A DNA stretch of 64,000 bases from Octopus sinensis (GCF_006345805.1 NW_021832533.1:186001-250000), one strand, 5' to 3'. Numbered from the stretch's first letter, positions 11,464 through 38,912 are shown. Numbers and translations: made by a program. Notes: generated by a model from the letters alone, not told the origin.

Positions 11464-14010
11464 ATGCAGCAAATCCTGGAGAAAGAAGACTTGATATCAC
11501 TGGGAGACATAATATTTCACTATCCCGACCAAGAAATTCCAATCGACGTGTGGTCACTGTGTTGGTTGTGTGCACAATGTCTTGAGACCCTGAATACTAT
11601 AAACAGAAAATACTTTTACGTGTGTCCAAGCAGTGTACTATTTGATTACTTCGGAAATGTCCGGTTTTACAACAACGTGGAAGGTACTCCATAAATAAGA
11701 CTTGCTAGTCGACCCATTATTCAAAAGTGGTCAATCTGAGCTGAATCAAGCAGTAAAGTTGATTGTGCATTGGTAGGAACAGATATATTCACTCGGGATG
11801 ACTTTGATGTATGTGTTCGAACACAACAACGACCTGAGTGGAGTCGTGTGCCCTAATCTGGGAGAACTAATGAATGCAATGACCTCCCCTACGACCGAAA
11901 CCTCCATTACATATCACCAGATTTTACAAATGTGCAAGGAACATGCAAAATGTGCCAAATCACAAATCTGTCGAATATATCAACAAGTACAAGCCAGTAT
12001 AGAATACAATCAACCAACAATCGAGTCTCCAGTCTCTGAAGAACAAGACAGTCAAATTCATTTCGAGGAGACTTCAGTCTACCATTCAGAGAGTGGGGAC
12101 TCGTGTTTTGGGGAAGGGGAAAACGTCCCTGTCGAAAGAGAGGAAGTAATGTCGATTAGACAACTTCTACAAGTATATGAACAGTTTTGAGTGACAGTTC
12201 TATAAACATGATTGCGCACAAATCATAAAGAGTAACTTTAAATTGTCTGCTGTGTTTTATCTGTTTGCGGAAATGCTCAATGAGGACTGTTTTCCCCTCC
12301 TGGATTCGGTCACGTGATTAATTCATTGAGTAGATAAAGTTCGCAGAGTTCGTAAAAAAGGATCCACAAGTCGGGGACAAATCCAAACTCGACATGTTCG
12401 GACGTCTCACATCCAAACTGAGTGAGTAGATTATGGACATTGTAGAAATGAAAGCTCGAACTACTATCGACCAGTCGAATTACTACTCAGCGCTGTTCCT
12501 CCAAGTGAGAGGGAATGAAGTCATATAGATTTGCTCGTTTGTGGTGGAAAACAAATGTCAGTCTCTTCAATTCCCAGTCAGGACAATATTCGAACAAAAA
12601 CTGGCCGATAAAACCGACTTTGTCGATTATTTGAAAAACGTCTTAAACAAGTAGTGAGGAATACTAATGATAGAGAAAACATATTTGATGCCAATAATCT
12701 GTACGTTCTGTACATTTACCGACTGTTTGTCAGTCCTCAAGAATTTCTGGAAATACTGATCAGTCACATTGACTTGTTGTACAAGTATTCATTCTTTTCA
12801 TTGCAGATACAACCAACTCTATTACATTCAACTCGTCAGTATTTGGGTTTTTGAGTTCTACCAAATCGACTTTAAGGACACCAACATGACTCTCCAAATC
12901 GAGCAATTACTCGACAGACCTTCTGTTTACTCCTAATCTTGACATTTAGTCGATTTTACAACAAATAAAAAAATCATGGAACTTGGCCTCTCTACAAAAC
13001 ACTCATTCCTCCCAATTTGTGAATTACATTCTTCTGACACCCTCCAATAGAGAGGACGACCATAATTTGTTTCCCAATCTCAGGCCGTGGGAGATCCTGG
13101 AGGCCCTGCACTTCATCCTGCAGAACGTCTACTCAACCATTCAGTCGATAACATTCGCAAACAATCTAAAAAAGAACAATTTTCTCAGGTTGTGGGTGTC
13201 TGGGATGGGTAGAGTGATGGGAGACCAATTGGTGGACGATTGGCAGGCACAGACGAGGACTGTGAGAGTAGTGGAGGACAAATGTTCAAATTGGATATCA
13301 GCAGAGGTGTTGGGTGGGGGTGACTGGGTGGAATGTGCACTGCTCACATGATAGACACAAGTCATAAGAACAATAATCCAAGTAGTCAAATTGGCTGCAC
13401 ATAAACACGACTACGCGTCCCTCGACGTACTTCTGGCTGGTTTGCAGTGTCCTCGGGTAAGACAACTCAAAGTAGACACATTGGTCCTCATTTTTTAGGC
13501 CTGGGACCACATTTCTACCAAAAATATGAAACTCCTCAAGAAACTTGAACAGACAATTGTAGTCGACTCACTTCATGTTTTAGGAACAACTGGGAAACAG
13601 TCATGAACTACTCCCAAAATATGCCAAACACTTCTCCTTTACTTGTTCGGTGGGAGTATTCGGCAAATATATTTTTGGGACCACCGAGAAGACGGAAACA
13701 CGTGATCTCGACTACTTCCGGTATCCCCCATGTCATATTCAGGGGGTTGTGTGATCGACTGGTCTACTGGGACATCCTCAATCGGCGTAACAGAACTACT
13801 GTCACTCGAGACTGTGCTTTGGTGGAAAGAGTTGTGGAAAGAATTAGACATTTGACCATATATTACTAATTGAGAGTGAATATGTCGAGCAATATTCATT
13901 AAATTTGTATTTTGAGAAGTAGAGCGAGAGCTTTTTGAGTGTCCTCCCTTATTCGAGTCTCAATTTGGGCTAAAAGAGCACGTCGACGGCGAATCTCGGA
14001 TATGATAAAT
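11464..14010 (+). CDS. KNDC1: KIND domain + REM + CDC25 RasGEF protein (very-KIND/KNDC1-like), multi-exon; start and end approximate
   Basis: KIND-like LISLGDII...VWSLCWLCAQCL...SVLFDYFGNVRF, then after 25-nt (11684-11708) and 24-nt (11753-11776) introns QIYSLGMTLMYVFEH...LGELMNAMT; REM-like LYIYRLFVSPQEFLEILISHI; CDC25-like SNWISAEVL, DYASLDVLLAGL, VRQLK|AWDHI. Domain order matches KNDC1 (comparison from memory). Confidence 0.78.
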
Positions 14011-14952
14011 TGACGGACGTCATCCCTTGACAACAATTTGATCTGTTGTGATGTCATTTAGTACTAATTGGGATTATTGAATTGAAAATTTAATAATTTG
14101 ACAGATTAGTTATAATATGATAATTATATGGACTATCAATGTTATGGGAAATAATACATGAATACATCAAAATGTATTATAAATGAAAGGGTTTTAGAAT
14201 TTTGGGACTTTTTCTACCTGGACTTTTCTAATTGAAGTGCTTCACTTGGAAAAAAAATTTATTACAAAAAAGGTGTAAAAACAGTTACAGAAAAATAAAA
14301 ATTACAAAAAAAATTATACTAAAATTTTGTTTAATTCAACGTGTTTTGTTTACCTCTATTTGATCCGAAATACAAAATTACAAAAAAGATTAATTTATGT
14401 AGGGAGAAAATTACTTAACTGTCCCGAATTCTTTTCCAGGACCATGAAAATTCCCGTGGCTTACTTCTACCAAAAGCAATCCTTCTTCCGATGTCATATT
14501 AAAGGCCGTAGAGAAATTTCTTGCGAGAATGCGTCCCCGTAATTAACACAAATTTTGTTTACTTATTAAATATACACTCTTAAATATTTGGATGAACGGA
14601 ATTTAGATTTATCTTCTTCAGAGTAACTAAAAAAATAGAAATTCGTTTTTCTTATCAATTAAATAATCATTGAAAGAAAAGCAAAAAAACTGTTGACCAT
14701 TTGGCCACTCACAGCAGTAAAATATTAACTAACATTAAGTATATTTATCTGTGCAAAATCCATCCAATTAAAATAAATCATTAATAAATTTTTTCTTGTA
14801 TATATAATAGAGAGTAAGCTAAGAGTACAGCGAGAGCCAAAAGTACATATTCAAAGGGTAAAAGGAACAGCACAATCGACTACTAAAACACAGAAAATAG
14901 AATGACTAAATAAAAAAGAACATCGCAAAAGAAAGAATTAAGAAATAGAGAA

Positions 14953-15207
14953 TTATTCTATTTTACGACGGAATTGGCAGCCTTCTCGGAGTTTGCATTT
15001 TCCTCCCTTGGGGAAGCAGAGAGGGACATTACACCCAACACAACTGATCACCGTCTGAGAGTGACTGAAGATTGTCGTCATTGCATTGCATCCCCCACAA
15101 CGAACGTCCATGAAGTAGGAATTCGGAGATGGGACCAGACGTTTTAATTTGTGCTTTCGTTGTTCATCCTTAGGGTCAGGGTATAATAAATCTTGGGCGA
15201 GTGTCAT
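14953..15207 (-). CDS. RPS27: 40S ribosomal protein S27 (eS27)
   Basis: 84-aa intronless [13 protein letters not shown]...[22 protein letters not shown]...C..C...GCQFRRK; same length and motifs as eS27. ATG at 15207. Confidence 0.97.
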
Positions 15208-15254
15208 TAGTATACCCACAACAAGACTTAATATAACGTGGTTCCTTTATTATT

Positions 15255-18227
15255 ATTATTATTATTTGCAACATACGTAGAATCATATTAGTTATAATTT
15301 TACTCGTGCAGCATTAAAAACAATCCTTTGAACCAGCCTCCTCCAACCTCCTCTGTCGTGAGCGAGTTTCCTCAGCTCGTCCAGATCCTCACCACTCCTT
15401 AGCCTTTTCTTCACACATTTCAGGTCTCCGTCAAGTGTTCCGGCAGCGTAACACGTGGACGTCCACGGAAGCTCGATCCCTCTTTCAGGAAGTAGCCCTC
15501 CATTGCTATGTTAGCTGGGGCAAGCATGTCCATTCGTAGAATTTGGCCAAATAACCTCCACCGCATATTAACGATTTCCACACTCAGAGGGCCAGTTCTG
15601 CATCTATTGTATAGCGATTCCTAATTGATTCTTATAGGCCAGTTCAATCCCAGTAGGGATCTAAGTTGCCTGCGGTGAAAAGAATCGAGTCCACGTTGTT
15701 CAGTACTAGACATTCCCCAGGTCGCCGAATTATATGTCAGGATTGGTTTGACAAAGGCTTCATACATCCTCAGACGAAGTGACGTACAGAGTCGTCGTTT
15801 GCCGATCCACTCTTTCTTTATCTTGTTCATCGTGGCCCAAGCGAGAGCCTTTCTTCTGACAATATCATGGCCGTCCCCAAGTAGAGAACCGAGTTTGTTC
15901 GTTTTGCGCCAGGCTTCACTTGAGCTGCTCTCCATCCTCATGATTTCAACGATGTCGGTTTTTTCAACGTTCATTTTAAGGAACCATCTGTTCAGCTCAG
16001 CAGGTGCCACTTCAAGGAGTCGAAGTAAGTAAGGCCGATTTGTCGTCTGACACGAAGTCGACGTCATCTGCATATACAATTTCGACGATATTGCCAGCAT
16101 AGAATTTTCGAAGGTCTCGTAGTGCCGTCTCCAGATAGATCACGAATAGCAACGGCGAGAGGGCGTCTCCCTGAGGGGTACCGACGTTGCACGTGAATTC
16201 ACGGGAAAACGCCGTGCCGACCCGCACCTTGAGCTTTGTATTCGATAGTAGTACTCTTATCATATTGACAGAGTCAGGGTCCAGGAATTGTTCCAGTATT
16301 TTGAGGAGTAGACCACGGCGTACCGTGTCAAAGGCCCTAGACAGGTCTATTCCCAGGACTGTTGTTGCATTTGTATCTCTGGGTGATAGCGCAGTACCAC
16401 TTGTGGGCCCAGACAGCATCGGCGGTGGATCTTCCTGTCCTAAATCCACTATGACTCGGGGATAGATAGTTGTCCACTTGTTCTCTTATTCGGTTCAGTG
16501 TAACTAATCCCAAAAGTTTCCGTAAGGTGTTTAGCAAGATTATAGGGCGTAGATTTTCGACAGGCCCAGCCTGCTTGTTAGGCTTTTGGATCGGTATTAA
16601 TAATCCGGAATCAAGACCGAGGAATTCCTTTTTCATAAACATACCATTGAGTAGCTCCGCCAGTTTGTCTGTTAGTGCAGGCGGTCCGTATTTAAACAGT
16701 TCTGAATTTATTCCATCCGGTCCAGAGGAGCGGCCATTTTTAAGTTTGGCTATTGCAGTTGATACTTCACCGGTGGTGATAGGTAGGCTGAGATGAGTGG
16801 TGTATCCGCTGGTGTAATCGGATATTTCTCCGTGAGCGGTTAATATACTCTCGAATACGAGGCTATATATTCAGCCTGCTCTTTGGGATTTGTGATGAAT
16901 CTTCCATTGCTGTCATGGATTTTGAGTTTGTTAGTTTGTTTTTTCCTGTTGAGTAGGCGGATTGCCGTAAACATTTTTGAAGAGTCCTTTAGCTGTTCAA
17001 TTCCTGCAGCTATTAAGTCGAGTTTGTTAGTGAAGTTTGTCTTGTTCAACATTTTGATTTTTTTCTGGGTAGATGAACGTCTATTCTGTAAGATTTGTTT
17101 CTTCTTCGGATCAGATGTGTTTTCCAGTTGTAGTCTTAGCTCCTTTTGTTCTTTGATGAGGGCAGGGAGATCAGAGTGTATACCTTTGTTGCATAGTACT
17201 TGCGACCGAAGGCCAATTGCCTCGTCGGCTGCCAAGAGGATCCCTTTCATTGTCTCCGCCCAGGCACCTCCTGGAGAAAGTTCGGCATTTATGTTTCCAA
17301 GAGATTTCATGATTGACAGTTGGTAGTTGTCTCTGACCAGCGTAGATGAGCACAGTTGTTCGATTTTATGCCTTATCCTTACATCAGCGTTGGGCCCCCT
17401 TCGTCGTAGGTCAATTGATGTCTTCATAGCAAACTTGGCAGAGACAATTTTATGATCACTGTAAGTAGCTGCACCTCCATAAGACCTTGAGTCTCGGAGA
17501 AGCGATTTTTCCCCGGCTCGACAGACGATGTAGTCAATTTGGTTGAAAATGTTGACGGACCCTGCGGTCGGTGAGGGTCGTTGGCCAGTCCACGTCGTTT
17601 TGTGACGCGCGGGATGCTGGAAACCGGTGTTGCATAGGAATAGGTCAAAGACCGACAGAATTCAGCTAGAACAGTTCCTGGATAGTTTCTGATTCCTCTT
17701 CCGTGATGGCCAATAAAACTTTCGTTTCCCTTACGGGTTCCAACTTTCGCATTCCAGTCCCCGGCAACAAACAGAAAGTACGAAGAACCGAGGTCTGTTA
17801 ATGTCCTTCCTAATTCCTCATAGAAGATATCAAGTTCTTCTGGATTTTTTTGAATACGTCCACTGTGTGGCGCGTAGACATTGACAATTGACGTGAGTCT
17901 CCTCGATTTGCTGCTTGAGATTGTACGTAGTTGTAAGACGCTGATCCTATCGCTGACTTTCCAATATCGATATAGTCTGGAGGTGTGGTTCTTGTGTATT
18001 GCGAATCCTTGTCCATAATGTATAGATTCTGAGGAAGCAGTATTAGGCGATAATTTCCGTGTATTTCGTCAAGTCCGTGTTTTACTTTAGTCTCCTGTAG
18101 ACAGCATATAGAGCCCTGGTATTTTTCGAGATCAGTACATAGAAGGTGCCTCTTAGCCACGGTTTTCAGACCTCTGACATTGAAGGTAAGGATTGTTAGT
18201 TCATTAGATTGTTTCGAATGCTTTCTT
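15255..18227 (-). mobile_element. RTE-like non-LTR retrotransposon (APE-RT, frameshifted, (TAA)n tail, 15-bp TSD)
   Basis: APE start TILTFNVRGL...CLQET; RT motifs ENLRPIILL, DLSRAFDTV, GTPQGDALSPLLF, YADD; (TAA)n tail at ~15255-15266; TSD GGTTCCTTTATTATT at 15240-15254 and 18228-18242. Confidence 0.93.
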
Positions 18228-19959
18228 GGTTCCTTTATTATTGTATATATTTAAATTTTGTAATAATTATAACTTATTTTTAAGAATATAAAAACCAATA
18301 TAAATTCTGATTCTATCACATAAATATACTCTCTTTGAGAAAGGAGAGTTCGGTGGTAAATATTTAATATTAAAATTCGGAATGAATTATTCATTATAAA
18401 TAATTAATTTGGAAATTTTTATTAAAAGTTTCTTTGAGCTTGTTCAAACATTTTTTAAAGTATCCCCATTTCAGTAAAAATTAAAAATGTCATGGAAAAT
18501 AGTTGTATATTTGTTCACTGTCGCAACATAGATATGTTTCTGTTTTTTACTTGGGGACCGTCAAATAGGGCGGGTTTCCAGACTTTTTTTTCTTGCTGGC
18601 GGTTTGTTCAAGAATCACGGTTCCGTGTTTTTGTTAGTACTCCAAAGCCCCTATGAGACTAATTTGCATAGAATTGACTCATAATCATTGTAGTTAGTGA
18701 TGACTCGTAAAACAGTTTGACAATCATACAGATACTGTCAAAAATTTAAACTTTCTTATAATTTTTTATAGAGTCCAGTTCAGTTCAAAAACTAAAAATT
18801 GATAATTCGAGTTGAGGTGGTTGACTTTCCCCTTATGTACAAAGTATCAATCTAAATCAGTAATTCTCAACGGGGGCGCTGGAATTTAATTATTATAAAT
18901 ATTTGTATTAGATTTTGTAAATCATTATCAAGTGCTTTTAAAAGCAAAATATTTGTGCTGATAATCAATGTATTCGGACGTATATTCAGCAAAAAGCCTT
19001 TCAATGATGATATCATCATTCTTTTGTTCCCTGTCTTCAAAATGTGTTTCAAAATTTACATAAAAACTTCACTGACTGAATCCACTCACACATGATCATA
19101 ATTGTAAATATCACTTCTAATGGATACAAAGGGCCTTTAATTGCTACCATTCCTTTCATGTTTTATTTTGAGCTTTTTCAGCTTGCTATAAATTGATTTA
19201 TGACAAGCTTTTCGATCCAAGTGAATGCTTATTTATAATGGATAATCCTACTCAAATGAAAGTAATAACTTGAATTTTAAAATACTCAGTTAGTTTACTT
19301 TAAGAGATGCATACATGGCTCTCTACATGTCGAATAACTACAATAACACTGTAGCAGTTATCATAGTATATTTTAAGGGTGATTCTAAAATTACAAACAA
19401 TTCCACATGCAGAAACGTGTAAAATTGAGATAATAGATATCCAATCAATTTTATTCCTTACCAGCCTATCTTGTATTTTACAAAATAAATTGATTTATAT
19501 GTTAGATCAACCTCAAGTCTTGCATCAATCTCGAACTGGTCAACAATTGGATAAAGGGACCATTTGTCTAGCAAATCAATTTGGGTTGGTGGTCTTCAAT
19601 TTTGATTACTCATTTTAGCTTTCCTTGAAACAAGTCGAATGTCGTATTTCGACCGAATACAACACCTATTACAACGGTATGCAGAAAGAAAGTCAAGTGG
19701 AAAAAAGGTCAAGTGGAAAAAAGTCAAGTCGTCTTTGTTTATTTTATATCTTATCTTTATAGAAATAATAACAACTTTTAATTTTTAACAATTTTTTTAA
19801 ATACTTGACTTTTTTCCGCTTTAATTTTTTTTTATTTATCAATTTCGAAATAATAAAAGTGACTTGACTTATTTGCTTTGATAAATCTTTTTGGCTTAAT
19901 CAGTTTCAAGGCGTATCTTAATCTTAATATCGTATCTTAAATATTATGCATGCCGCAAA

Positions 19960-20390
19960 AATAAGTGACAAAATGAAGATAATATAATTTAACAAAGGAG
20001 GCAAAAAAATTGTTTCAAAGGTTACAAGGCACTCGACAACAAAAAATTATATAATTTTTTAATTGTGTCAAAAAGTGTTCACAAGGATGCAGAGGAAGCT
20101 TAAGAACAGATCATAACTTTGAGTTTCCTAAAAAAGGAATCTCTCAAAATCACGAATTAAACGAAACTCAAATAAAAATGACGAAGTTGTGCAACAAAGC
20201 AAAACTTCTTGCAAAAAGAGCCAAGAGAATCCCTTACAAATCTATTCAAATGTTTTTTCTCAATGTGATACAGCATCCAGAATTATTCTCCCTTCTGCAG
20301 ATTCTTTCAAGCAAACAATAAGGAATCAACTCTTGTCTCTACATATTCCAAAAAATATTCTAGATCTCGAAGATTTTTTTAAAAACATAT
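19960..20390 (+). mobile_element. Possible degenerate MULE-type transposase remnant
   Basis: Peptide QQSKTSCKKSQENPLQIY...ILPSADSFKQTIRNQ resembles the region following FLYWCH in MULE transposases; weak. Confidence 0.3.
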
Positions 20391-20399
20391 GATTATATT

Positions 20400-20700
20400 T
20401 TTTTCTCGCCATGATAGAGCCCTTCTCAAACTCGATATAAAGAACGCATTCAACTGCATCCGCCGGGATTACTTCCTTTCAGTTTGCCACGACCATTGTA
20501 CCCCTGGCGCTCTTGTCCTATGGAAGACCCAGCTCTCTAATATTCGGATCAAATATTATCCCCTCATGTACGTGAGTTCAACAGGCGATCCACTAGGACC
20601 CCTCCTCTTTGCTTTGGGCATCATTGGAATAGTCCAGTCGGTTTCTTCTGAATTGAATATTTGGTATCTGGATAGCGCTACTATCGGCGGCAATTCATAA
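20400..20700 (+). mobile_element. CRE-clade-like reverse transcriptase fragment (degenerate)
   Basis: LLKLDIKNAFNCIRRD, GDPLGPLLFALGI and SELNIWYLDSATIGG correspond to CRE-type RT motifs (catalytic YLDD decayed). Confidence 0.72.
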
Positions 20701-21039
20701 TTTGAATTTTGTCTTGAAATAAGTTCTTAAAGAAGAAATCTCTCACAATCACGGATTAGACAAAACTCATGAAGTTGTGAAACAAAGCAACAGTATTACA
20801 ATCTTCCGACGATGTGAATAATTGCCAATTGATTTATTATAAAGACTGTTGAGATTCTCTTCAGTATATCATGAATGACACTTTTCATTATATGAAATCA
20901 TGAAATACAGTGAAATGGCGTAGGTAAATTAATTTTTAACTACACAGGTCTCCATTACCTCTGGGAATTACAGTATTTCACCCGTTCGACATTCTCGACG
21001 TGTTCGAGTTTGTCATTTATGTATTTTTCTATACAACAA

Positions 21040-22092
21040 ATTGTTTTGGAAACTTTCTGTCCATTCACTCCATTCTGTCCTGTTCAGGTTTAAAGAAGAC
21101 TCTAACTCCGACCTCAAAATGTCTAGCGAGTGGCTGTACAAAGGGAACAATACACCAAAGACTGAAGCTTTGTATTGCCTCTTGCAAGATAGAAATTTGT
21201 TTTTTTCTTCTGCGCGTGGTGCGCTGTGTGATCATTGCAAAAAAACTAAGAAGACAGTAGACCACATGGCTACACGGTGCAACAGAATGCTAAACAGTGA
21301 CTATGTGAGAAGGCACAATGAGGTTGTGAGATGCATCCATTTGCACGTATGCAGACAGTTTGGAATAAATAAAACTGGGAAACTAAAGTCTCACTCAGTA
21401 CAGTCTAGTTTATCGACTCAAATGTCGAAATAAGAGTAGATACACCAATATTGACTGATACGCAAGTTCAGTTCAATAAGCCAGATATCTTTATCTATGA
21501 CAGATTGAAGAATGAGATCACCATAATTGAGGTGGGGATTACATCGCAGGAAAGACTCAAACAAACCAAAGTTGAGAAATTACATAAATACGATTTGCTG
21601 GCTGGAGAACTAAAGATGTTTTACGGGGCACCAGTCCAAATTATTCCGATTGTGCTGACGTGGGACGGGGTGGTTTCAACGTGTTACAAAGCCTATATGG
21701 AAAAGTTATCCGTTGAAGGCCCGACAAGAACGTACATTCAGGGACTTGTCATGAAGAAGACATTGGAGGCAATTGTGGTGGAACATAGGCATGGAATCCA
21801 TACGTCTCAAGAGGAATTCATTACGGAAACCAGTCAGTTGGCTGAAGTGGCAAATCAATCTTGCGAGGACCCTTCGGATGAAGCAAACTGGAAAATCTTG
21901 TGTTCGGAGAATGAAAGTGCTGATGGTGCGTTGGTAGAAAGCTCTCCCAAGAGGAGAAAAATGGGAAAATGTAAAAATGATAACCAGAATTTAACCATTT
22001 TATTGAAATTTCATTTTCAGTTACTTTTAAAAACAAAATATCAAGTTAAAAACTCAAGAGGAAAAACATTTGAATATAAATTGATAAAATAA
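21040..22092 (+). mobile_element. 3' part of R4/Dong-like non-LTR retrotransposon (CCHC knuckle + REL endonuclease), RT absent
   Basis: CDHCKKTKKTVDHMATRC knuckle, YVRRHNEV, KPDIFIYD...IIEVGIT (PD-D/ExK), EKLHKYDLLA; one -1 frameshift near 21420. Confidence 0.85.
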
Positions 22093-25742: not shown

Positions 25743-28260
25743 TCAAATGGACGACCCACTCATGGAATCAAATTGGTGTGCACTCAACCTCAAATACTTG
25801 TTCTCGTAGTACTGGGAATACAACCAAGTCATCACCCTCTTTGCACGCAGGACATTGGCAAACTGGACTGATATTTTGTCAAAGTCCTTCATGACACTTT
25901 TCAACTTGGCGTTCATTTGGGTAATACTCCCCTCCATCTCCCCATTCCTGCACTCCAATTGTCTGTTCCGCCCACTCACATGTGCCAGACGACTCTCATA
26001 CTCACTCCCCATCCTCTCCATCCTCTACAATACAACAACTCCACCACCCTCCCACTCTCCTCTCGACACCACTCCAACTCACTCCTCAACTCACCGTTCT
26101 TCTCACTCAACACTCGGATTGTCCCCTCTCGGGAGGTCAGTCTGCACGACAGTCCCTCCATCTGCTGGGCCATCCGCACACTCCCTTGTCTATGCACTCG
26201 AATGCACTCCTCTATGTCCCTCAGGTGATCCTTCATGCTCTCTCTTATCCCCCCCACACTCAACTGATCCACCACCCTCCACAACTTGTACAACTCACTC
26301 CTCCTCCCCTCTCTGGTCTCCCTCAGTTGTCTCTCCAATGTGTCCACTCTCAGTCTATACCCCTCACATGACTCCTCCAAGTGGGCAATCTCCTCCTCCT
26401 GTGCTGCACTCACACTCTACAGTCAGAGTGGGGACTACTATGCTATTCTCATATTGCACGTGCAGATTGAGCATGTCCTGTCGACATGTCCACAACTGGG
26501 CATCACTACTACACACTCTCCTCTCATATTCCTCCAACATGTCCTCTGCTTGCACACGTGACTTGCTCCACTCCTCCTCCTGCTTGCACAGTTCTTCCTT
26601 TGCCTCCCTCAGACTGACTTGCAGACTGTTCTTCTCACTCCTCACCTCCGCCAACTCACTGCGAAGACTGACTACTTCATTCTCCAGTCTCCTTGTCCTC
26701 TCACCACTCTACTCTCATCACACTGTCCTCCACTTGCTGTCTTTCCTCCTCCAACTGACTGGCCTGTTCTTCACACTGACTGACCAGTTCTCCATTCCTC
26801 GCCTCCTCCCTCTCCAGACTGTCCTCCATCTCCCTCAGTCTGTCCTCATACCCCACCATCTACCACTCTCTCTCACCCTCACACCTTCTCACTCCTTCTA
26901 TCCCCCTCTTGTTGGTAATACTCCACTTCGTCCTCCAACTGACGCAGTCGGTGACTCAGTTGGCTGACTGTCTCCTCCAGGTGGACTGTCTTTTCCACTT
27001 TCTTCATATTTTGGAGATTAATCCTCTCCAGACTGGCTATGGTGGCCTCACTCCTCTACTCCTCTCACTCACCCACCTCACTTTCTGTTCTTCCATCAAG
27101 CCATGTCCATTACACGTCCTCAGTCTGCTCAATTCGTTCTTTAATTCACTAATTTCCCCCTTTTTATTCGCAATTATTTTAATTTGTTTATCACATTTGA
27201 GTGTGGCCTGACTCACTCTCTCCTCACACTTGGCCAGTTTGGTCTCATAGCTCTTCCTCAGACCACTCATTGCCCCACGCAGACGCCCACACTCACTCTT
27301 GTGCCCCTGCAGTGACTCATTCTCCTACTGTCCTCACTGTGGGACATACCTGGGTCACCTCCTCCACCTTCTCCACCAATTCCTTCAGTTTAGAGCTGTA
27401 GCCTTCCACTAATTTGTCACTGTCCTGTCGAAGGCGTCTCTCCTTGCACAATTCCTGGCTCTTTTCCCTCAACTGTGCTCGGAGTGAGTCCATTGCTGTG
27501 TAATTGGCAGTCATCTCCTCCCGCAGTCGACTGCACTCCTCTTGTCTCCCCACCAACTGTTCTAACTCCTCCTTCTGACTCCTCACAGGTCACACACATT
27601 CCCTACTCGTTTTCCCGCCTCAGTCTGCCCACGTCCCTCTCCCCTTCCTCACACTCCGCCTTCAGTGTGGTTAACCTGTTTTGTGTCTGCCTCAGTTCTT
27701 GTCTTAATTTTCCCTCCATTTCTTCAGACTAGGGACACTGTGGGCACGTGGGCTACTTTTTTGAGTTTTTTGAGGTAATTGGTGTCGACTAGTTGTAATA
27801 TCTCCCCAACACTGCTTATTATGTTGTTCTGGACTTGGCGACTCCTTTTTTGGCATGTCTTTGCTTGGTCCAGCTTATTTCTCAGTTTGTGGCATATTCC
27901 CTTGTATTTGTGGGCATCCCTCGACTGGGGACTGCTGGAATATTCTAGAATACATTTTCTGTGGTCATTTTTGTGTTTTCATCACAAAGGTCGTTTATTC
28001 TGTCCACCAGGTCGATTGAGTTAATCGAACCTACAACAATGAGAATATAATAATAATTTATTAATGTATTAAATCAATATTATTTATATATATTATATTT
28101 ATAACAAACATTCACAGTCGGAGAGTCCTCTCTGTTTGCTAAAAGTTATTTTCCAAGACTACCTGTCTGAGGAATAGTTCGAAGACATGTCGTTGAGGGT
28201 TTTTAAGTCAGTCTCCTGGCTATTATTCATATTAGTGCAGACAAATGTCGTCAGGACAAC
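25743..28260 (-). CDS. Long coiled-coil protein (E/R/L/K-rich), multi-exon; identity unknown, 5' end approximate
   Basis: Consecutive E/K/R/L-rich ORFs joined in frame by 25-nt GT-AG introns (e.g. gtagggaatgtgtgtgacctgtgag, gtatgtcccacagtgaggacagtag). Confidence 0.72.
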
Positions 28261-29199: not shown

Positions 29200-29720
29200 G
29201 TATGCTGTGGGTCATATTGGAATATAGGAGTGTCCCCACTGTTCTGCAGTGGTCGATTTTTGAGGAATTTAGTGATCAATATGACCCAAGGAGGATGCAC
29301 TGTACATTTGAATATGACACTAATTCACACGACTGGCACGAATTGGCGACGGTTAGTGAATGTGTTGAGAGGAGAATGTCAAATCTATTCAAAAAACGTA
29401 ATCAAGTGGAGTGCTCAATCACATCTACGAGTAGAACAGAATGAGATGACACTCCATGAGATAACCATTTATTTACGATTCATTAATTTCTCACACATTT
29501 TGAACATCCAATTATCTCTAAAATACCACATTTTTACAAACCCTCAATTTTTGACTTGTTTGTTGGGATTCCCTTCAGATGGACACATTCGGACATGTTA
29601 GTGGATAATGTCAGGCAGACACGCACTTGTCATCTGTTGCCTGGAATACAACAATGACGAGTTAATTGGAATATTATTGAATTTAATGTTCATAACACCA
29701 TTCGGGCACATCTCAAAGGT
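29200..29720 (+). CDS. Possible small hypothetical gene
   Basis: GC level like neighbouring exons and overlapping open frames; no motif recognised and no confident splice model. Confidence 0.25.
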
Positions 29721-31311
29721 GGTCGATCGGGTCTTTCTAAATGTACCCGATCATTGCTTTTTGGTGAAATTTTAGCAAGTTTTCAAGCTAAACAGTATTC
29801 GAGGAAAAGAACGTGATTAGGGACTAATTGGAGACACAGCTGACAGTAAGTGGACTAATTGGTGTATTGAGAAAAGAAGGAAAACTCAGTTAGGTGACCA
29901 CAAGTAAGAAGGATGAGAGTACTCACATTGGCGATGAAAAGACGAAGGAAAATATTTAGAATTCTATTTACAGTAAACCTTGACTTGAAGCCTAATTTTT
30001 AAAATGCCTCAAAAACCGAGAGGCAACAAAATTTTTTTGATTTTCTCTAAATTTCTGTTTTTATTTAACCTTAAATGGTATATTTAAAATGGAAAAATTC
30101 TGATATCTGCCAAAAGATGAACATGCTGATAAGCTGAAAATTGTTACTAAAAAGAATGTTATCAATCTTTACAAATAATCAAAGATAATTGGGCTATTAG
30201 CTGAAATAAAATAAGTAAGGCTGTCAAGGAAGAAAAACTACATAATCTAGATAATTGGGCGATTTAAAAATAAATCCAGCTTTGAAATCTTTGAATATAT
30301 AGGATATATTATAGTACAGGCAAACATCTAAATCTCGCCAAGATTTGGTGGGTCGCATAAAATGGGGGGATTTAGAATTTGGTGAGGAATAGAGGTTTTG
30401 TAGAATATTCCTATTTCGTCCGCATTATAGATATTTTCAGGTCCATATTCTTGCAATTTTGTGAAAATTACTGAAATAAAAGAATTGATTGAAATAATAA
30501 AAGTTATTAGCTTAATATTATTCAGCTTCTTGAATTCAAAAAGCCAGACAGTCCTAGCCTTGAAATCAGTAATTCCTTGTAGAACGGCAACTTTTTTTTG
30601 CTTTCAAAAGAATAGAATTATCGTCCAAGAATCCGCCAAGAAGTTTCACTTTGTATCCACTTCATAACTTTTGTACCAATAGTTGAATATGTTAGATTAA
30701 ATAAGCGTTTGATAAGAGGATCACATTCAAGTATTTTTTGTTTCTCAAGCCTGCGATGATTGATTGATCTTCGCGAAATTGTTTTCTTAAGATTGAAGAA
30801 AAAACAGAGGTTGTATGTTGCATTGTCATATGTTTGTTATCATCAATTCATTAAACGACAGTACACTTGCGCATGTTGGATAAAGCGTAGTTAAGATTAT
30901 TTTATATTAAAAGTTAGATTAACCAAAAATTTTTTAATAATGAAAAATAGTGGCGAGATTTATAACTTGGCGAGCAATAGAGGTTTCTTTAGAAATTTTC
31001 ATTTTTGAAAAAAATAATTAAGTGTTGGCAATAATTAAGTGTTAGAAGAAAATTGAGGAAATTAGAGAATTAGTTGAAAATAAATAATCCCATAAACAAG
31101 TCCTGAAAGAAAGAATAACTGAAGTAATATATAACAGATATCTAGCCAAGAGTAGCGAATCTTATAATGGAATTAAAACAGAGGACAAACAACAATATCG
31201 GAAATGTATGATGGATTTGCAAAAATTGAATGTTTAAATCAGTGTCAATTAATTCATAAAAGGAAGTGAAGGAGGATTAAGATTAGGGAATCCTTAAAAG
31301 TGAGAATTAAG

Positions 31312-31993
31312 TTAAATAAGCCGACAAAGGGCAGTCTTTTTGGGCTGAGGAGTGAAGACCTGTTTCATAGCCTCATCAAAGACCTCCTTGACCCGAATCA
31401 ATTGCATGGCCGAACACTCGATGTACTTGGCGGCCTCTGTAAGTGAGGACATGGAAGGAACTGAGTCTCTTGGCCTCCTCGACTGCCATTTGGTAGGAGA
31501 TGGGGACCTGTCCGTTGGCCGCCAACTTTTTACTGGCCTCGTCGTCATCTCGGAGGTCACTCTTAGTGCCGACGAGAATGAAGGGAGTGGTAGGACAGTG
31601 TGCCTGTATTTCGGGGACCCACTGAGAGTAAGGTTGGACACCCACCTTGGAGGCCACGTTTTTGAATGACTGAGGGGACATGACAGAGAAACAGACGATG
31701 AAGACGTCCTGAGGGTAAGAGAGGGAGGGGACTGTTTGAGGGTAGGAGAGAGGTCTGAGACGGTCGTAGTCCTCCTGTCCTGCCGTGTCCCACAGTCCCA
31801 ACTGGACGTGTGTGCTTGTATTGCTCGTCTGGGCCATCACTCGCATTGTGTAGTTGTCGAACACTGTGGGCACGTACTGCTCGGGAAACGTGTTGGTCGT
31901 GTAACTCACCAGCAGACATGTCTTGCCCACTGCACTGCCAATCACTACACTCCCTCACCCATCTCCTACTATCACACATTTTACGTGCTGCAT
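31312..31993 (-). CDS. Rac1: Rac-subfamily Rho GTPase, 4 introns (24, 24, 24, 25 nt)
   Basis: [12 protein letters not shown]|[37 protein letters not shown]|DVF (Trp at Rac position 56), TKSD, YIECSA, C-terminal CRLI CAAX. Introns 31935-31958, 31709-31732, 31622-31645, 31437-31461. Confidence 0.93.
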
Positions 31994-32165
31994 TTCCGGA
32001 TTAATCTTATTAATTTATTTATTCTCCATATTCCTATTCTTTTATTTTATTAATAACCCACTTATTTTATTTATCAATCAAAACTCGAAATATCTAAATG
32101 ACTATTTAAATATTAGATAACAAATGGTACCACATCACTCAACTAGAATGGACATTTTATTACAA

Positions 32166-32954
32166 TTATTTAAAAGCATGATCCAACAACTTGGGTGGAG
32201 GACTGAACAGTCCATCAATGAAGCAGTCGGGCAACTTGTCCTCCAACAACAACCCAATCAAGTCCGCATTCTCCACTCCAGTCATATTGAATGCTCTCAA
32301 TCTTTTCAAATTCCTCAACCGTGCTAAAAACAACAAAACTGAAAGCAATGAAGCGTGGCAAGGCCTCTCTCACTGACCGAAGAACACCCACTCAAGTCCA
32401 AGTAGCGAAGGGAGTCACTAAAAGTCCTCAACCTGGCCACCACAAAGTCATCCACGTTGACACATTCACTTAAATCAATATAATTTAAATTTTCACATTT
32501 ATCTATAAATATATATAATAAATATATATATAATATATATATAACCAATATAATCCAGAATATCATAGAAAAATAAAGTGCCCGAGGCGTTGATAGCCTC
32601 CAGTCGAAGACCAGGGACAAAGCAGGTGGGGAGGGAATGGAGGGAGGTGACCCACCTGGGAGGTCCTTTTATGGGCAAACCGGTCTTGGTCGTGGAACTT
32701 GACTGCCCCTTTGTAGGAGAGGATTATGTTGGCTGAGGCTATTTCATCCCCCCACACCAGTTTTTTGTCGCATTTCTTTCTAGTTTTGTCGGGTGGCTGC
32801 CTCACTTGAATCGTTGTTGGTATTTGTCCATTAAGTTGAGGGACAGCATCTCCATTAGTGTTTCTGTGTTTGATATATTCCATAAATATTTCAAATATTG
32901 CTGGAAGCTGCGTTCTGGTTTGTAAAACAGTTTATTTGCAAGGTTTTTCAACAT
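32166..32954 (-). CDS. DMAC2: DMAC2/ATP5SL-like mitochondrial complex I assembly factor (LRR), 4 short introns
   Basis: Spliced product ...ASANIILSYKGAVKF..., LEAINASG, YIDLSECVNVDDFVVARL...SLRYLDLSGCSSVSERGLATLHCFQ|NLKRL...LLEDKLPDC matches DMAC2 C-terminal motifs (from memory); introns 26, 25, ~41, 26 nt. Confidence 0.8.
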
Positions 32955-33080
32955 GAGTATAATCCCCACAAGAACCTTTTTGAAATTTATTTAATTTAAA
33001 TTTTAAAAATACTTGCGTGACGTGGGTATTTTGTGACCAATAATAAAATGAAATAAAATAATGTTAGAAATATTAAAAAG

Positions 33081-33902
33081 TCAATTATTCCTAAAATAGT
33101 CAATTCCTGCCTGATTGATGAGTGCAATGTGCTAGAAAGTGAGCCAAACAAACAAACAGGGACATCCCTGAACTCCTGGTTGTAGTCAAACCCCATCCCC
33201 ACGATGAATCTGTCAGGAATACTGAACCCCACGACTATATATAGTCCAATAGTAGTACAGTCTGCAGGCATCGTCGGCTTGGCCAGTCGTTTAGAAATAA
33301 AAAAGGCGGTTTTGACAGAGAGGGGATCATACTCGGCCAGAACCTCCTTTAGCTTGGTTATAGTCCTCCCAGTATCCACAATGTCTTCAAGAATAAGAAC
33401 ATTCTAATTAATAATAATTTATATTTAATTAATTATTATTAAAATAATAATTTACCTTCTGGCGAACACAGGATAACACCTGGGGGGAGAATACACTCAC
33501 ACTTCCGGTCGACTGGTCGTTCTGGTGGTAACATTAGTGATTAAACCAGATAACTGGCAGTCCTGATGAATTCCAAATGGAACCTCACATAGGATTCCTT
33601 CGAAGAGGAGAGATTGAGACGTTCCATAGCCTCAGTGACCTTCACAGTGAACTTGAATGCCCCTTTGAGAACACAGAGGAGAATGAGGGACTGTCCTTTA
33701 TATATATTCCATATTTCATTGCTCATTTCATTAATCCTACTGCATTAGTAGTGCTGTGTGCCTGTCCACTGCCTCCTCCTGTGGAATTAAAATGTCGTCT
33801 ATGAAGGGGCGGTAAAATTCGGGCAATTCGAATTGGTCCGCGTTATTTCGCTCGTGGTCGTCAGGTATCTGTTTGTCACGTGCTAACACTAACCGTTATC
33901 AT
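33081..33902 (-). CDS. HPRT1: Hypoxanthine-guanine phosphoribosyltransferase
   Basis: LCVLKGAFKF, FIRTASYL|NDQSTG, NVLILEDIVDTGRT, VGFSIPDRFIVGMGFDYNQEFRD; six introns (25, 25 GC-AG, 25, ~49, 24, 26 nt). Confidence 0.95.
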
Positions 33903-34031
33903 TCCACGTCACCAATTATATTTATTAGCATTTTTAAATTTTAAAAAATAATAAATTAATTTAGAACAAGTTTTGACGTGGTGCTTTCCCGCGTCCAAAA
34001 ATGTCACTAAAAATGCCTGGAGTTATATATA

Positions 34032-34740
34032 CAGTGAACAACAATAAAAACTAATAAATCGTCATTTTTATTATCAATTTTATTAAATTAAAAACTTAAG
34101 CATGATAATATCATCTATATTTTTTAAGTTTATAATATTTATCCATAAATCTTTTTAAAATATTGAGAATAAAGCAAAAACCGATTTTTTAAGACAAAAA
34201 ATTCCGGACAAATGTCAAAAAATAAAATATCAGTAAGGAATATGCTTTCCTCTCGATTTATATAACTCTAAACTACGAGTTTTCATCGAATTTATTAATT
34301 TTCGAATAAAATCAGTTGGAATTTTATTCCAAATTTCTAATATTTTATCCTTTTGTTGATGTTTATTTTTTTGTCGATTTTTTGTATCATCCCTCGATAA
34401 TTCATATTTAATTTTCGACCAAATATGTTCAATGGGATTCATATCGAGGAATTGTGCCGGCCAATCAAGTAAATTAATTTTGTTTGCAGAAAAATACTCC
34501 TTTGTTGCTTTCGAAGTATGACATGGGGCATTGTCTTGCTGGAATATGAAGCTGTTTAATCCCATTTTTATGGCTGATTTTTCCAGATTGTTAGCAAGAA
34601 TGTTTATATATTGTCCTGAGTTTATTTTTTCATCGATGAAACATTACGAACCCATTCCAAAATATGAATATCATCCCCAGACCATAATTTTGCCGCCACC
34701 GCTAGTCATTGAATTCGTTCAAATTCAATCATAGCTAATC
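34032..34740 (-). mobile_element. Tc1-like element, 3' half (DD34E region) with one TIR
   Basis: FQQDNAPCH...WPAQFLDMNPIEHIW; TA|CAGTG terminus at 34030-34036. Confidence 0.85.
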
Positions 34741-35029
34741 ATTGAACATCTGAAGAAAAGGCAGAATAATTGGCATGTATAAATCTGGAAAAACATACTG
34801 AGAAATACAAGAATCAGCAAAAGATTCCTCAGAACGATATCGCAAATTATCAGAAGCTATTTAAATAAGTGCTCAACAAACAAACAAGTCGGGTCTGGTT
34901 GACCATCGTTGCTCAATCGTCAATAAATATTTTAAAGAGGTTTGAAATGAGGATGTCAATTTAAACTGTTTTAAATTTGCCAAAACATTTACAAAAAAGA
35001 ATGGAAATCAGCTCAAAGAATAAGAAAAA

Positions 35030-36597
35030 TTATTTTCCATCAATTAGTTTGAGAACTCTGCCAAAGGCAATAGTCCTGCCCTCATCCCTGAGAATAATCC
35101 TCCCCAGAATGGGCAGGTCGGCAGCCACGGCCACACAGATGGGCTCCTCCACAGCCAAGACCACCTCACATCGACTGTCCGTCCTCAGGAAACGAGGATT
35201 CCTCACCTTCTCCTCCCCCATCTCCTGAGTACTCACCAGCCGTCGGAATGTCACCTGGTGAGTCACGTGGTGGATGTGCATCATGGCGGGAAAACCAGCA
35301 CAAATTATATTCGACAGGTCCATTGTCACTATCTACACACTCTAATTGACACTACACCTCCACTTTGAAGTTCTTGGCCATTTTGACTGGATGTTCGGGG
35401 GGACACATCACAGAGCCCACTGAGATCTCCTAAATCACGTTTTTTAGTCACAACAAACATCTTCTGAGGCTCCCAGGATTCTCAGACGGATATTATAGCC
35501 TGGACTCGACTGCTCGACCTCAATCTCGTCCACCATCACTTGGGAGACCGTGACAGTCACCTTATTAAATTAAATATTAATTTTAATTAATTTTAATTAT
35601 TATTATCAATATATTAATAATATACTTTGGCGGGAAGAATCATTAGTTTTTGTCCTGTGGTGACAGTCCCACACTCCAGTTTGCCAAAAACCATTGTCCC
35701 GATTATTATTGCCTTGTCGGCCACCAAAAACCTGACTGGGTGGTCAGGCCTTCGATCAATTGGCTCCAGACTGTCCAACAGACCCAGAAAAGTCCACTTT
35801 CTTTGCATTACTCGAGCAATCAGACCTAAACCAGGGACACACAGCCACAGGAGGCATTTCCTTAAGGAAAGACCCGTCAAACCCCGAGCAAGGCATAATA
35901 AAGCACTCAGACTTGGAGAATCCCAACTGTTTCAAAAAGGGCGCCAATTTCGCGCCACAGAATTTAAACCTTTGGCGGGAAAAGTGTGAAATTACCTTTG
36001 TTCAGCCCAGGTGACAGAGGGGTCATCCATTTTATTAATAAGGACAATAAGATATTTAATGCCAGAAGCGCGGGCAATGATGGCATGTTCCCGCGTCTGC
36101 CCGCCCTTGTCAAAGCCTGCCTCGAACTCCCCCGCCCTGGCCGAGATGACGAGTACTGCCACGTCTGCCTGGACCACCCCGTTGATCATGTTGGGGACAT
36201 ATGCCTTGTGGCCTGGAGCGTCCAATATAGTCACGTGCTTCTTGGGGGTTTTGAAGTAGGCACACCCCACTTCCACTGTCTTGCCTTTTTCCCGCTCTTC
36301 CGGGTTGGTGTCGAGAGCATAGGAGAGGTACCTCACACATTACAGTTGGGAGTACCACGACTCACGGTTTAGTTCCCGCGCTTCTGCCTCGTACTTCTCC
36401 AATGTTCTCTTGCTTATCATTCCTGTTAGGAGCATTAGGTTCCCGCCAATTGTCGATTTTCCCGCGTCCACGTGGCCAATGAAGATTATATTTATGTTAT
36501 CTTTTTTGCCCAAATCGGCTGTCTCTTCATTTGGTGGTGCTGGTTGATTATATATTAATATTTTACTGTCCTCGTGCTCCAGATCATACCCCACCAT
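35030..36597 (-). CDS. GSPT1: Eukaryotic peptide chain release factor 3 (eRF3/GSPT), short N-terminus, about 7 introns
   Basis: FIGHVDAGKST, RESW|YLSYALDTNPEEREKGKTVEVG, LDAPGH, GQTREH, LINKMDDP, C-terminal GRIILRDEGRTIAFG; introns of 24-29 nt plus one ~66 nt. Confidence 0.95.
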
Positions 36598-36629
36598 GTT
36601 GTATATTTATTTTATATTAATTTAATTTG

Positions 36630-37112
36630 TTAAGTTTATTAAATATTATTTATAATATGTTAGTGGTGGTCTCGTGTCGTTGGTCACATCGCCTCACTAT
36701 AGTGTATTCTGTTTTCTCAGTGTTAATTTTTAGGAGTGATTTTTCAAAAGTGTTGGCCAATTTGTCCATAGTACCTTCTAGTTGGCGGAACGACACAAGG
36801 AAAAATGGAGGCATACAAAGAAACTTGCTCAAAAGATTAAACAACATATGGTTGAGAGGCAAACAAATTTCTGCGTCTCTAAAAATCAAACTTTACAATA
36901 TGTTCGTAAAACCAGTCCTACTATACAACTCCTCCTCTTGGGCACTCAGGAAATGGAAAATCTCAATTCCTTCCACAGAATGCAGCTGAAATACATCCTA
37001 GGAATATTTTGGCCAAAACGGATTTCAAACAAACATCTCTACTCCAGGTACAATGTACACCCGTTGGACAAAGAAATAAGAAGCAATAGATGGGGTTTAT
37101 TCGGTCACATCC
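36630..37112 (+). mobile_element. RTE-like LINE 3' fragment
   Basis: KINTEKTEY, KIKLYNMFVKPVLLYNSSSW, FHRMQLKYILGIFWPKRISN, WGLFGHIL; frameshifted. Confidence 0.8.
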
Positions 37113-37394
37113 TGGCAGAGATAGCGACAGATAATCGACTTTATTGCACACTTCATGTTGTACTACGTCAGTTTAATTGACTATTTATTTTCTCCAAACA
37201 CAAGTCATTGTGTGGGGGCATGTTGGCCTCCTGGATGATAATTAAGTACCCTGCTTACATCACCAGGTGGATATCCTCTCTCAGTTAATCACCCATTTGG
37301 CTGGGTGACCATTTCTAGTCACTCAGTAGTTTAGTTAAAGGCATAGATCACACTCTTGTTAGTTTAGAGCTTAATTTAGTCAGCAATGCCAATT

Positions 37395-37637
37395 TGGCAG
37401 AGATAGCGACAGATAATCGACTTTATTGCACACTAAAAAGAAAGGAAGGCTACTCAGTGCCTCCTTGTAGTCCTCCAACTGACACTTTCAGTCGTGGACT
37501 CTGAAATAGCCAGATTATGACTCAGTGATGATAGACTGCGCGGTAAGGAAACCCTCGCCAAACGGAAATAGCCAGTCTAGATCACGCTTTATTGCATACG
37601 ACGTCCAGCACAAAACTGAAAATTCTAGTTTACGACA
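37395..37637 (-). repeat. Possible LTR remnant
   Basis: Minus strand starts TGTCGTAAAC, contains AATAAA twice, ends ...CTCTGCCA followed by aatTGGCA (PBS-like); no TSD found. Confidence 0.35.
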
Positions 37638-38167
37638 AATATGAGCTTCTTTTCTGAGCTCCATTGACAATATTGATATATTTTCTGTCAATGAACGACT
37701 GATGATTAGTAAAAAATGCAGTATCTAATGATTTGTTGGAGGTTCTGGTAGATACTACAATAAATACCAAATTGTCAAAAACAATGTTGGAAACACGAAT
37801 GAGTAATTATTGAAGAAAGTTATAGGCTGGAAGATGTATTAGTACAATGTGCTTTCCACCGAATTATTATTGAATAACCTCACAAATTTTCTTATTTACA
37901 GATATCTTATGAATAATATTGAGTTAGCCAATTTTTGTTCAATTTATAAATGATTTATTTACGGATTTTATGGAAGTATCCAGTCATTACTCGAAATGCT
38001 TCAGAGGTAAAATATTTATACAATCCGAATAAAAAAAATTTTTGTTGTCATTACGCCTTGGAATATATGTGTAAAGTAATATATATTAACAAAAACAGTT
38101 AAAAAAATATATCAATTAAATGTCTAACCAATGAGTTATTCACAATAAAATATGACCTATATTTAGA

Positions 38168-38912
38168 ATGGTTCCACTTGTTCTACTTTTTGTTCGTTCT
38201 GTGATCCAAAACGACTGTAACCTAGCAGAACGGGTTTCGGGAAATTTTAATAGAACTGAATTACAAAACTGTACATTTAATACAGAACACGTTTTGACAC
38301 ATACAGAACACCTTCTAATTCGAGATTACGTTGAATTTCGAAATGGAGAAATATTTTCGAATTTACCCAACTTGATATCATTGTAATAACATTTCATTAT
38401 TACCAGTGAGTGTCGAGGAAACTCGTTAACGAGAATACTAAACAACTCATTTTATAGAGTGATTGACTTATTCTGGATGTACATTCAAATATTTTAAATT
38501 ACTAGAAAACTTACTTTATGCAGTAATCTTCGTTACATTGATGTAAATGCCTTTGCAAGTCTACACACCTTAACATATCTGTACAAATCCTATTTTTACA
38601 TTAAAGTTATATGCCACCAAATTTTATTTTTCTGCCACCAAAAATCATTAGTTCGCCCAAACTTCAGTATTTTACATTACTGACTGTGTAGTATTACTAA
38701 TAGAACGAAAATGTGCATATACACGCCTTCATCAGTGCAACCCACTATGTATACTTTATTATTCTTATATAAGGATTACAAAAGTGACTAATGAACTAGG
38801 TTTTCTGTCCATTGAATTAGACACCAAAAGTGTAGAAAAGTCTACAAATCAAGTTAATGGAGTAATACTAATCACACCACAAGCATATGGTGTGTTTGTT
38901 TACTCACAATAG
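38168..38912 (+). CDS. Small leucine-rich-repeat protein, copy 1 (possibly secreted)
   Basis: Phase-2 introns 38383-38406, 38479-38505, 38581-38606 flank a 72-nt and a 75-nt exon encoding LRRs (e.g. NLRYIDVNAFASLHTLTYL); hydrophobic N-terminus; start uncertain. Confidence 0.7.

Follow-up and report, generated by a model that had tools for sequence, protein, structure and literature searches.

Shortened introns were reportedly described in dicyemids by Ogino, Tsuneki and Furuya in 2010 (Gene 449:70). Tiny introns also occur in ciliates, at about 25 nucleotides (nt) in Paramecium and 15-16 nt in Stentor, and Paramecium depletes stop-free introns whose length is divisible by three (3n). In dicyemids, introns have a median length of 27 base pairs (bp), two thirds are shorter than 30 bp, and their positions are conserved (PMC6543705). 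The dicyemid 5′ splice site is reduced to 'GTa' and the 3′ splice site to 'AG', and weakly conserved A residues lie farther from the AG as the intron lengthens (PMC13644364). Dicyema japonicum, which was collected from the renal sacs of Octopus sinensis, has a genome with 36.7% guanine plus cytosine (GC), 49% repeats, many copies of open reading frame (ORF) 2 of long interspersed nuclear elements (LINEs), and a mean intron of 38 bp (PMC6736024). The myxobolids are the only other animals known to have such introns; their hosts are fish and annelids, and the likeness is reported as an independent convergence (PMC13644364). The present analysis concerns ultra-short introns in a stretch of 64,000 nt, referred to here as the window, from an O. 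sinensis assembly (GCF_006345805.1, NW_021832533.1:186001-250000). These are very probably U2-type GT-AG spliceosomal introns near the physical minimum size, carried by the nuclear genome of a dicyemid (D. japonicum or a close relative living in O. sinensis). The window resembles the described dicyemids in its length mode in the mid-20s, its approximately 5-6 ancestral introns per gene, its GC content of approximately 37%, its richness in repeats and LINEs, and its host. Ultra-short dicyemid introns are already described; the window is a hand-checked local sample and provides no new principle.

Intron lengths, termini and positions

Introns were called with a protein-to-genome aligner (BLOSUM62, GT..AG introns in all three phases, a flat intron penalty, 15-150 nt allowed), which was used without a length prior. 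Rac was aligned first with a RAC1 reference and afterward with the database entries of limpet RAC1 and bird RAC2; the references were the scallop, Lingula and Xenopus proteins for eRF3 and human HPRT1 for HPRT. For a gene resembling KNDC1, all GT/GC..AG joins of 15-90 nt between successive open frames were enumerated. An ab initio gene finder that combined codon log-odds with GT..AG introns, under either a flat or a peaked length prior, was dropped, as it mis-called the training genes and was blind to in-frame stop-free introns. The resulting gene models are as follows.

31312..31993, minus strand: Rac-family GTPase of 194 amino acids (aa) with a CAAX end, from flat-penalty spliced alignment to RAC1/RAC2
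31935-31958, minus strand: Rac intron 1, 24 nt, phase 2
31709-31732, minus strand: Rac intron 2, 24 nt, phase 0
31622-31645, minus strand: Rac intron 3, 24 nt, phase 0
31437-31461, minus strand: Rac intron 4, 25 nt, phase 1
35030..36597, minus strand: eRF3 (GSPT), 457 aa, manual model reproduced by spliced alignment
36332-36355, minus strand: eRF3 intron 1, 24 nt, acceptor GAG
35970-35995, minus strand: eRF3 intron 2, 26 nt, acceptor AAG
35801-35825, minus strand: eRF3 intron 3, 25 nt, acceptor AAG
35561-35625, minus strand: eRF3 intron 4, 65 nt, 5% GC
35430-35458, minus strand: eRF3 intron 5, 29 nt
35333-35357, minus strand: eRF3 intron 6, 25 nt
33081..33931, minus strand: HPRT, about 224 aa, from spliced alignment to human HPRT1; Pfam Pribosyltran contiguous (E=5e-20)
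33889-33912, minus strand: HPRT N-terminal intron, 24 nt, no homology anchor, with a 30-nt alternative
33737-33761, minus strand: HPRT intron 2, 25 nt, GC-AG, best fit at the conserved codon-45 phase-2 position
33522-33546, minus strand: HPRT intron 3, 25 nt
33404-33455, minus strand: HPRT intron 4, 52 nt, 4% GC
33235-33258, minus strand: HPRT intron 5, 24 nt
33132-33157, minus strand: HPRT intron 6, 26 nt
11464..13869, plus strand: KIND+RasGEF (KNDC1-like) gene, 695 aa, single ORF from join enumeration
11684-11708 (25 nt), 11753-11776 (24), 12173-12197 (25), 12309-12333 (25), plus strand: KNDC1-like introns 1-4
12422-12445 (24 nt), 12505-12528 (24), 12651-12673 (23), plus strand: KNDC1-like introns 5-7
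12785-12806 (22 nt; alternative 28), 12925-12949 (25), plus strand: KNDC1-like introns 8-9
13328-13354 (27 nt; alternative 13335-13361), 13472-13498 (27), plus strand: KNDC1-like introns 10-11
13559-13583 (25 nt), 13721-13742 (22), plus strand: KNDC1-like introns 12-13
14953..15207, minus strand: RPS27, 84 codons in one exon without an intron, from ORF listing and translation

Although any length of 15-150 nt was permitted, 12 of the 15 introns anchored by homology alignment measured 24-26 nt. When the 29 introns of Rac, eRF3, HPRT and the KNDC1-like gene were pooled, ten measured 25 nt, nine 24 nt, two each 26, 27 and 22 nt, and one each 23, 29, 52 and 65 nt. Thus, 27 of the 29 did not exceed 29 nt and 19 had 24 or 25 nt, the mode; the first-pass annotation had proposed more than 25 introns with a mode of 24-26 nt across a larger set of genes, and the four genes pooled here bear it out. 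The termini were GT-AG in 28 introns and GC-AG in one, and all ended in AG. Removal of the segments yielded collinear full-length proteins, contiguous Pfam domains and uninterrupted frames. In eRF3, the six introns were identical with each of the three references, and GTP_EFTU, D2, D3 and eEF1A_C became contiguous after splicing. The N-terminal HPRT intron (24 or 30 nt) is required because the sole available ATG must connect to the HPRT body. For HPRT intron 2, the only GT-AG alternative is a 19-nt segment at 33722-33740, which moves the junction by five codons.

In the KNDC1-like gene, a join of 22-28 nt was available at every junction, and removal of 13 segments of 22-27 nt produced one uninterrupted ORF. 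Pfam RasGEF (E=4.5e-9) runs across three of these junctions and KIND (E=2e-4) across two, the latter at 21.7 bits, under the Pfam cut-off of 26.7 bits. In the rest of the window and in block shuffles, a GT..AG join of 22-29 nt was possible for 14-15% of adjacent open-frame pairs, and 13 joins out of 13 are therefore far above chance. A few boundaries in this gene are ambiguous because they have no orthologue anchor.

The positions of the introns were compared with intron maps made by the same aligner, which gave four introns for limpet RAC1, five for bird RAC2 and 13 for scallop eRF3. All four Rac introns, which the first-pass annotation had placed at intron sites of human RAC1, coincide in position and phase with bird RAC2 introns 1, 3, 4 and 5, and three of the four coincide with limpet RAC1 introns 1, 3 and 4. 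The sites shared with bird RAC2 are GD|g|AVGK in phase 2, YPQT|DVF in phase 0, K|W in phase 0 and codon 150 in phase 1. All six eRF3 introns likewise coincide in position and phase with six of the 13 scallop introns, at RET|w|Y, EE|r|Y, PWY|r|G, NR|A, EEE|D and AQ|IV. Six HPRT introns had been assigned to human sites; five stand at what we take to be the human boundaries (c.134/135, 318/319, 384/385, 532/533 and 609/610, for which no literature confirmation was found), and the sixth lies only nearby. The short introns thus very probably derive from introns that ancestral animals had at the same codons. Most of each intron was deleted, leaving about 24-26 nt, and a minority remained at 43-65 nt of almost pure A+T. 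One intron was lost in Rac, at least four alignable introns in eRF3, two in HPRT and all in RPS27. Vertebrate RPS27 has introns; in the genome of the window, some genes (RPS27) have lost their introns completely while those of others have shrunk.

The segments might alternatively be something other than introns, such as assembly indels, frameshifts of decayed pseudogenes, or DNA otherwise eliminated or bypassed. In three 24-nt segments, two of them in Rac and the third in HPRT, the reading frame continues without a stop codon, so that they are invisible to open-frame logic. Nevertheless, 28 of the 29 segments begin with GT and all 29 end with AG, 10 out of 10 testable segments lie at orthologous intron positions and phases, and the in-frame segments split invariant motifs (YPQT|DVF in Rac). 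The same architecture also recurs in a UPF1 gene on a separate contig, and published dicyemid gene models with such introns had RNA sequencing support (PMC6736024). A non-intronic origin is therefore extremely improbable.

Splice signals and intron classes

Signal statistics were obtained from the 27 short introns and from decoys, defined as GT..AG pairs of 22-29 nt in the exons of the four genes. The donor was GT in 26 introns and GC in one; position +3 was A in 12, G in seven, T in five and C in three, and positions +4 to +6 were flat. This bears out the earlier remark that the donors are alike in little but GT. The reduced splice-site consensus (GTa...AG) of the dicyemid type was thus found, and the upstream exon position -1 was G or A in 24 of 29 introns. 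At the acceptor, position -3 was T in 16, C in eight, A in two and G in one, so that YAG ended 24 of 27 introns against 38 of 112 decoys (p=2e-7). GAG and AAG acceptors, which had been pointed out before, are real; they are exceptional, with three cases among 27, all of them in eRF3. An A occurred at index 16 from the 5′ end in 15 of the 27 introns, which corresponds to -8/-9 from the 3′ end, and yTnAy with its A at index 13-19 occurred in 12 of 27 introns against seven of 112 decoys (p=6e-6). The interiors were G-poor, and their T content was 0.35 compared with 0.23 in decoys (p=7e-7). A leave-one-out weight matrix separated introns from decoys moderately, with an area under the curve (AUC) of 0.84. 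The splice signals are weak, yet they go beyond GT, AG and length. The small sample from the window differs from the published D. japonicum logo, which has a bare 'AG', in that YAG is preferred more strongly and a branch-like A is present.

The first-pass annotation had proposed that the introns are defined largely by length. In its strict form, the spliceosome would measure length and the introns would carry essentially no signal past GT, AG and a fixed length. The near-uniform positions +4 to +6, the weak A/G preference at +3, the 19 of 29 introns at 24-25 nt and the AUC of only 0.84 are in its favor. In contrast, besides the 27 real short introns the four genes contain 112-118 exonic GT..AG pairs of 22-29 nt. 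These decoys outnumber the introns by about 4:1, which indicates that GT, AG and length are insufficient to define an intron. YAG, a yTnAy at a fixed place whose branch-like A lies about 17 nt into the intron, T-richness and the purine at exon position -1 further distinguish introns from decoys, and the short class coexists with introns of 43-65 nt. HPRT exon 4 also contains a canonical-looking 21-nt GTGAGT...CCCCCCAG at 33480-33500 on the minus strand; by homology it codes for a conserved beta-strand, and it is apparently a strong-looking decoy that is not spliced. Length alone is thus an improbable basis of recognition, and the earlier proposal is not borne out and overstates the part played by length.

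Under the preferred explanation, these dicyemid introns would be removed from the mRNA by intron definition, in which recognition takes place across the whole intron unit. A bare GT(R) donor would be read after a purine-rich exon end. The second element would be a branch-like A that lies about 16-18 nt into the intron and often belongs to a yTnAy, and the acceptor would be the first YAG, about 7-9 nt past this A. The T-rich, G-poor interior would replace a true polypyrimidine tract, and length would act as a tight constraint and not as the sole signal.

The longer introns of 65, 52 and 43 nt (35561-35625, 33404-33455 and 32503-32545, minus strand; the last lies in the DMAC2-like gene described below) are of near-pure A+T, with 4-5% GC in the first two. 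An earlier mention of AT-rich introns of 41-66 nt agrees with these three, except that the longest has 65 nt and not 66. They resemble the DNA that flanks the genes, and the introns of 24-26 nt have an exon-like GC of about 0.4 (mean of the short introns 0.41), which suggests two compositional classes of introns. It is also conceivable, but rather unlikely, that the ultra-short class is spliced by a ruler anchored at the 5′ end, in which the branch A lies about 16-18 nt from GT and the first YAG is used without a U2AF65/polypyrimidine step, and that the near-pure-AT introns of 43-65 nt form a second class recognized differently. When longer introns of UPF1 were added to the sample, the enrichment of A still lay 15-18 nt from the 5′ end, in a small sample. 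A 3n length was seen in 11 of the 29 introns, and three of these, all of 24 nt, are stop-free in frame.

31709-31732 and 31622-31645, minus strand: stop-free 3n introns of Rac
33235-33258, minus strand: stop-free 3n intron of HPRT

If retained, each would add eight residues without triggering nonsense-mediated decay (NMD). If the 5′-anchored ruler with two classes were true, retention of these Rac and HPRT introns would give in-frame isoforms that are invisible to NMD, despite the presence of UPF1.

Source organism of the window

A LINE within the window was used as a taxon marker.

54281..57027, minus strand: LINE with an endonuclease and reverse transcriptase ORF of 662 aa

The best representative match of its ORF was XP_029654785.1, 'uncharacterized protein [Octopus sinensis]', with 99% identity. 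This protein is encoded by VCDQ01012147.1, a contig of 31.6 kb in assembly GCA_006345805.1, and window positions 54281-57027 have 99.1% DNA identity to the contig across 2.75 kb. Three more LINE matches named O. sinensis have 34-45% identity. VCDQ01012147.1 also carries a gene for UPF1, the NMD helicase, at 14785-17491 on the plus strand. Alignment to human UPF1 gave one intron of 50 nt and no fewer than 14 of 24-32 nt, among which the call at 17094-17122 looks misplaced. The UPF1 introns have a mean GC of 0.22 and are far richer in AT than the short introns of the window (0.41). The shared LINE and the tiny-intron UPF1 gene indicate that the contig comes from the same tiny-intron organism, within the octopus assembly, which in this contig is apparently contaminated by its dicyemid parasite. 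The window itself is, on indirect evidence, almost certainly dicyemid DNA, and its species is most likely D. japonicum or a co-occurring dicyemid. The first-pass annotation had guessed a dicyemid, and the 99% DNA identity of the LINE to a tiny-intron O. sinensis contig strongly supports this guess.

The best 120 matches of eRF3 all came from animals. About 20 were molluscs; the others included vertebrates, one brachiopod, one sponge and a few arthropods, and cnidarians were absent. The best identity was 53% for eRF3 and 64% for Rac, neither of which has a close relative in the protein collection. These data bear on the possibility that the source is a myxobolid myxozoan, a parasitic cnidarian whose short introns are convergent with those of dicyemids. 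Myxobolids have a median of 22-27 bp, the same reduced 'GTa' donor, an A at a roughly fixed 5′ distance and conserved positions (RPS13) (PMC13644364), and fast-evolving Rac and eRF3 proteins without a close database relative would also suit a myxozoan. On the other hand, the LINE of the window is 99% identical to an octopus-assembly contig with tiny-intron genes, whereas the myxozoan life cycle runs between fish and annelids; this octopus link excludes myxobolids. Neither cnidarians nor myxozoans appeared among the best 120 eRF3 matches, where about 20 molluscs and a brachiopod did. The window is laden with transposons, compared with the relatively few transposable elements described in myxozoans, and its GC content of about 36% differs from the 29% of H. 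salminicola. Altogether, a myxozoan source is very improbable.

Other origins were rejected. Octopus itself was rejected as eRF3 is only 52% identical to that of the cephalopod Acanthosepion pharaonis and Rac is at most 64% identical to any database protein; cephalopod introns, moreover, run to kilobases. Ciliates have a similar range of lengths and minimal signals, and they differ by reassigned stop codons. Their rejection was based on the standard-code ORFs of 457 and 695 aa, the metazoan best matches and the presence of 3n stop-free introns; in contrast to the depletion in Paramecium, 11 of the 29 introns are 3n and three are stop-free. A microsporidian origin was rejected by the eRF3 matches. 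The first-pass annotation had argued against microsporidia from DMAC2, whose identity here is only that of a leucine-rich repeat (LRR) protein collinear with ATP synthase subunit s (E=2.7e-5), and this argument is unneeded because the best 120 eRF3 matches are all animals. The orthonectid Intoshia linei, likewise a parasitic 'mesozoan', also has reduced introns, at a density similar to that seen here. An orthonectid origin was rejected. In I. linei the introns have a median of 57 bp and are mostly longer than 30 bp (PMC6543705), against a mode of 24-25 nt in the window.

Several points weigh against the explanation of the window as dicyemid DNA with spliced ultra-short introns. Searches of the protein collection with the spliced Rac and eRF3 proteins gave nothing identical or close, and transcript or junction support was not found. 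The 13 KNDC1-like introns were picked among GT..AG joins partly by length and are not independent evidence for the mode, and the position match of HPRT depends on human exon boundaries for which the literature gave no confirmation. The AUC of only 0.84 implies that not all of the information used by the spliceosome has been identified. The assignment of the putative branch A is statistical (n=27), and its anchoring to the 5′ rather than the 3′ end is tentative. In addition, the source may be another dicyemid of O. sinensis instead of D. japonicum.

Other features and biological meaning

Transposons and satellites make up the bulk of the window, which has about 36% GC over its 64 kb, and the compact genes sit at 11.4-36.6 kb. 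The KIND+RasGEF gene lies on the plus strand, while RPS27, the coiled-coil gene, a C2H2 zinc-finger gene, Rac, the small LRR gene, HPRT and eRF3 lie on the minus strand. Fragments of Tc1/mariner and pogo are also present. The remaining features are listed below.

about 15.3-18.2 kb: LINE
about 46.5-50.3 kb: Helitron
32166..32883, minus strand: small LRR protein resembling ATP synthase subunit s / DMAC2, three inferred introns read by eye
32598-32655, minus strand: DMAC2-like intron, 58 nt, pyrimidine-rich
32503-32545, minus strand: DMAC2-like intron, 43 nt, AT-rich
32339-32373 (GT-AG, 35 nt), 32324-32346 (GC-AG, 23 nt) or 32339-32364 (GC-AG, 26 nt), minus strand: ambiguous DMAC2-like junction
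25743..27968, minus strand: coiled-coil gene, with a 22-29-nt GT-AG join at 9 of 9 frame junctions by enumeration
27925-27953 (29 nt), 27729-27756 (28 or 25), 27582-27606 (25), minus strand: coiled-coil candidate introns
27325-27349 (25 nt), 27056-27081 (26 or 23), 26860-26884 (25), minus strand: coiled-coil candidate introns
26709-26733 (25 nt), 26417-26438 (22), 26025-26047 (23), minus strand: coiled-coil candidate introns

In a PDB search, the DMAC2-like protein was collinear with bovine ATP synthase subunit s (3dze) and also matched FBXL2-type repeats; a word-indexed homologue search gave no matches, and Pfam LRR appeared only below threshold. HPRT, the DMAC2-like gene and Rac are arranged head-to-tail on the minus strand at 31312-33931, with operon-like spacing of only about 197 and 172 nt from stop to next ATG, and tens of kilobases of transposons surround this cluster. 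The coiled-coil introns are candidates only, because the purine-rich coding sequence gives many alternative GT/AG pairs. The 'LRR gene' segment at 38050-38950 on the plus strand has a second copy at 61500-62430 on the plus strand, 23 kb away and 95% identical. Comparison of the two copies gave no contrast between exons and introns, and the segment near 38 kb may be part of a repeat and not a single-copy host gene.

Tandem arrays with a unit of about 100 nt occupy 1-11200 and 57000-61300, and their reverse frames read ...KKIIFCVFVKMNNKKVLDSHDVVPQNLQAKKL... They are flanked by (CAGA)n-like microsatellites, and Helitron fragments lie among them at about 1.5-2.3, 5.5-6.3 and 8.4-9.1 kb. An Rfam scan and a tRNA scan of the window gave no matches, and no database entry was identical to the window ORFs that were looked up, namely RPS27 from either of two starts and a Helitron ORF.

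In GCA_006345805.1, at least one contig that bears a RefSeq protein model is apparently dicyemid. Genes of this kind will be fragmented by any gene finder whose minimum intron length exceeds about 20 nt. Introns of 24-26 nt probe how short an intron the spliceosome can handle, and they show which splice signals it can do without. The retention of ancestral positions means that introns can be shortened instead of lost when the genome of a parasite is reduced, as is known from dicyemids and, since 2026, from myxobolids.

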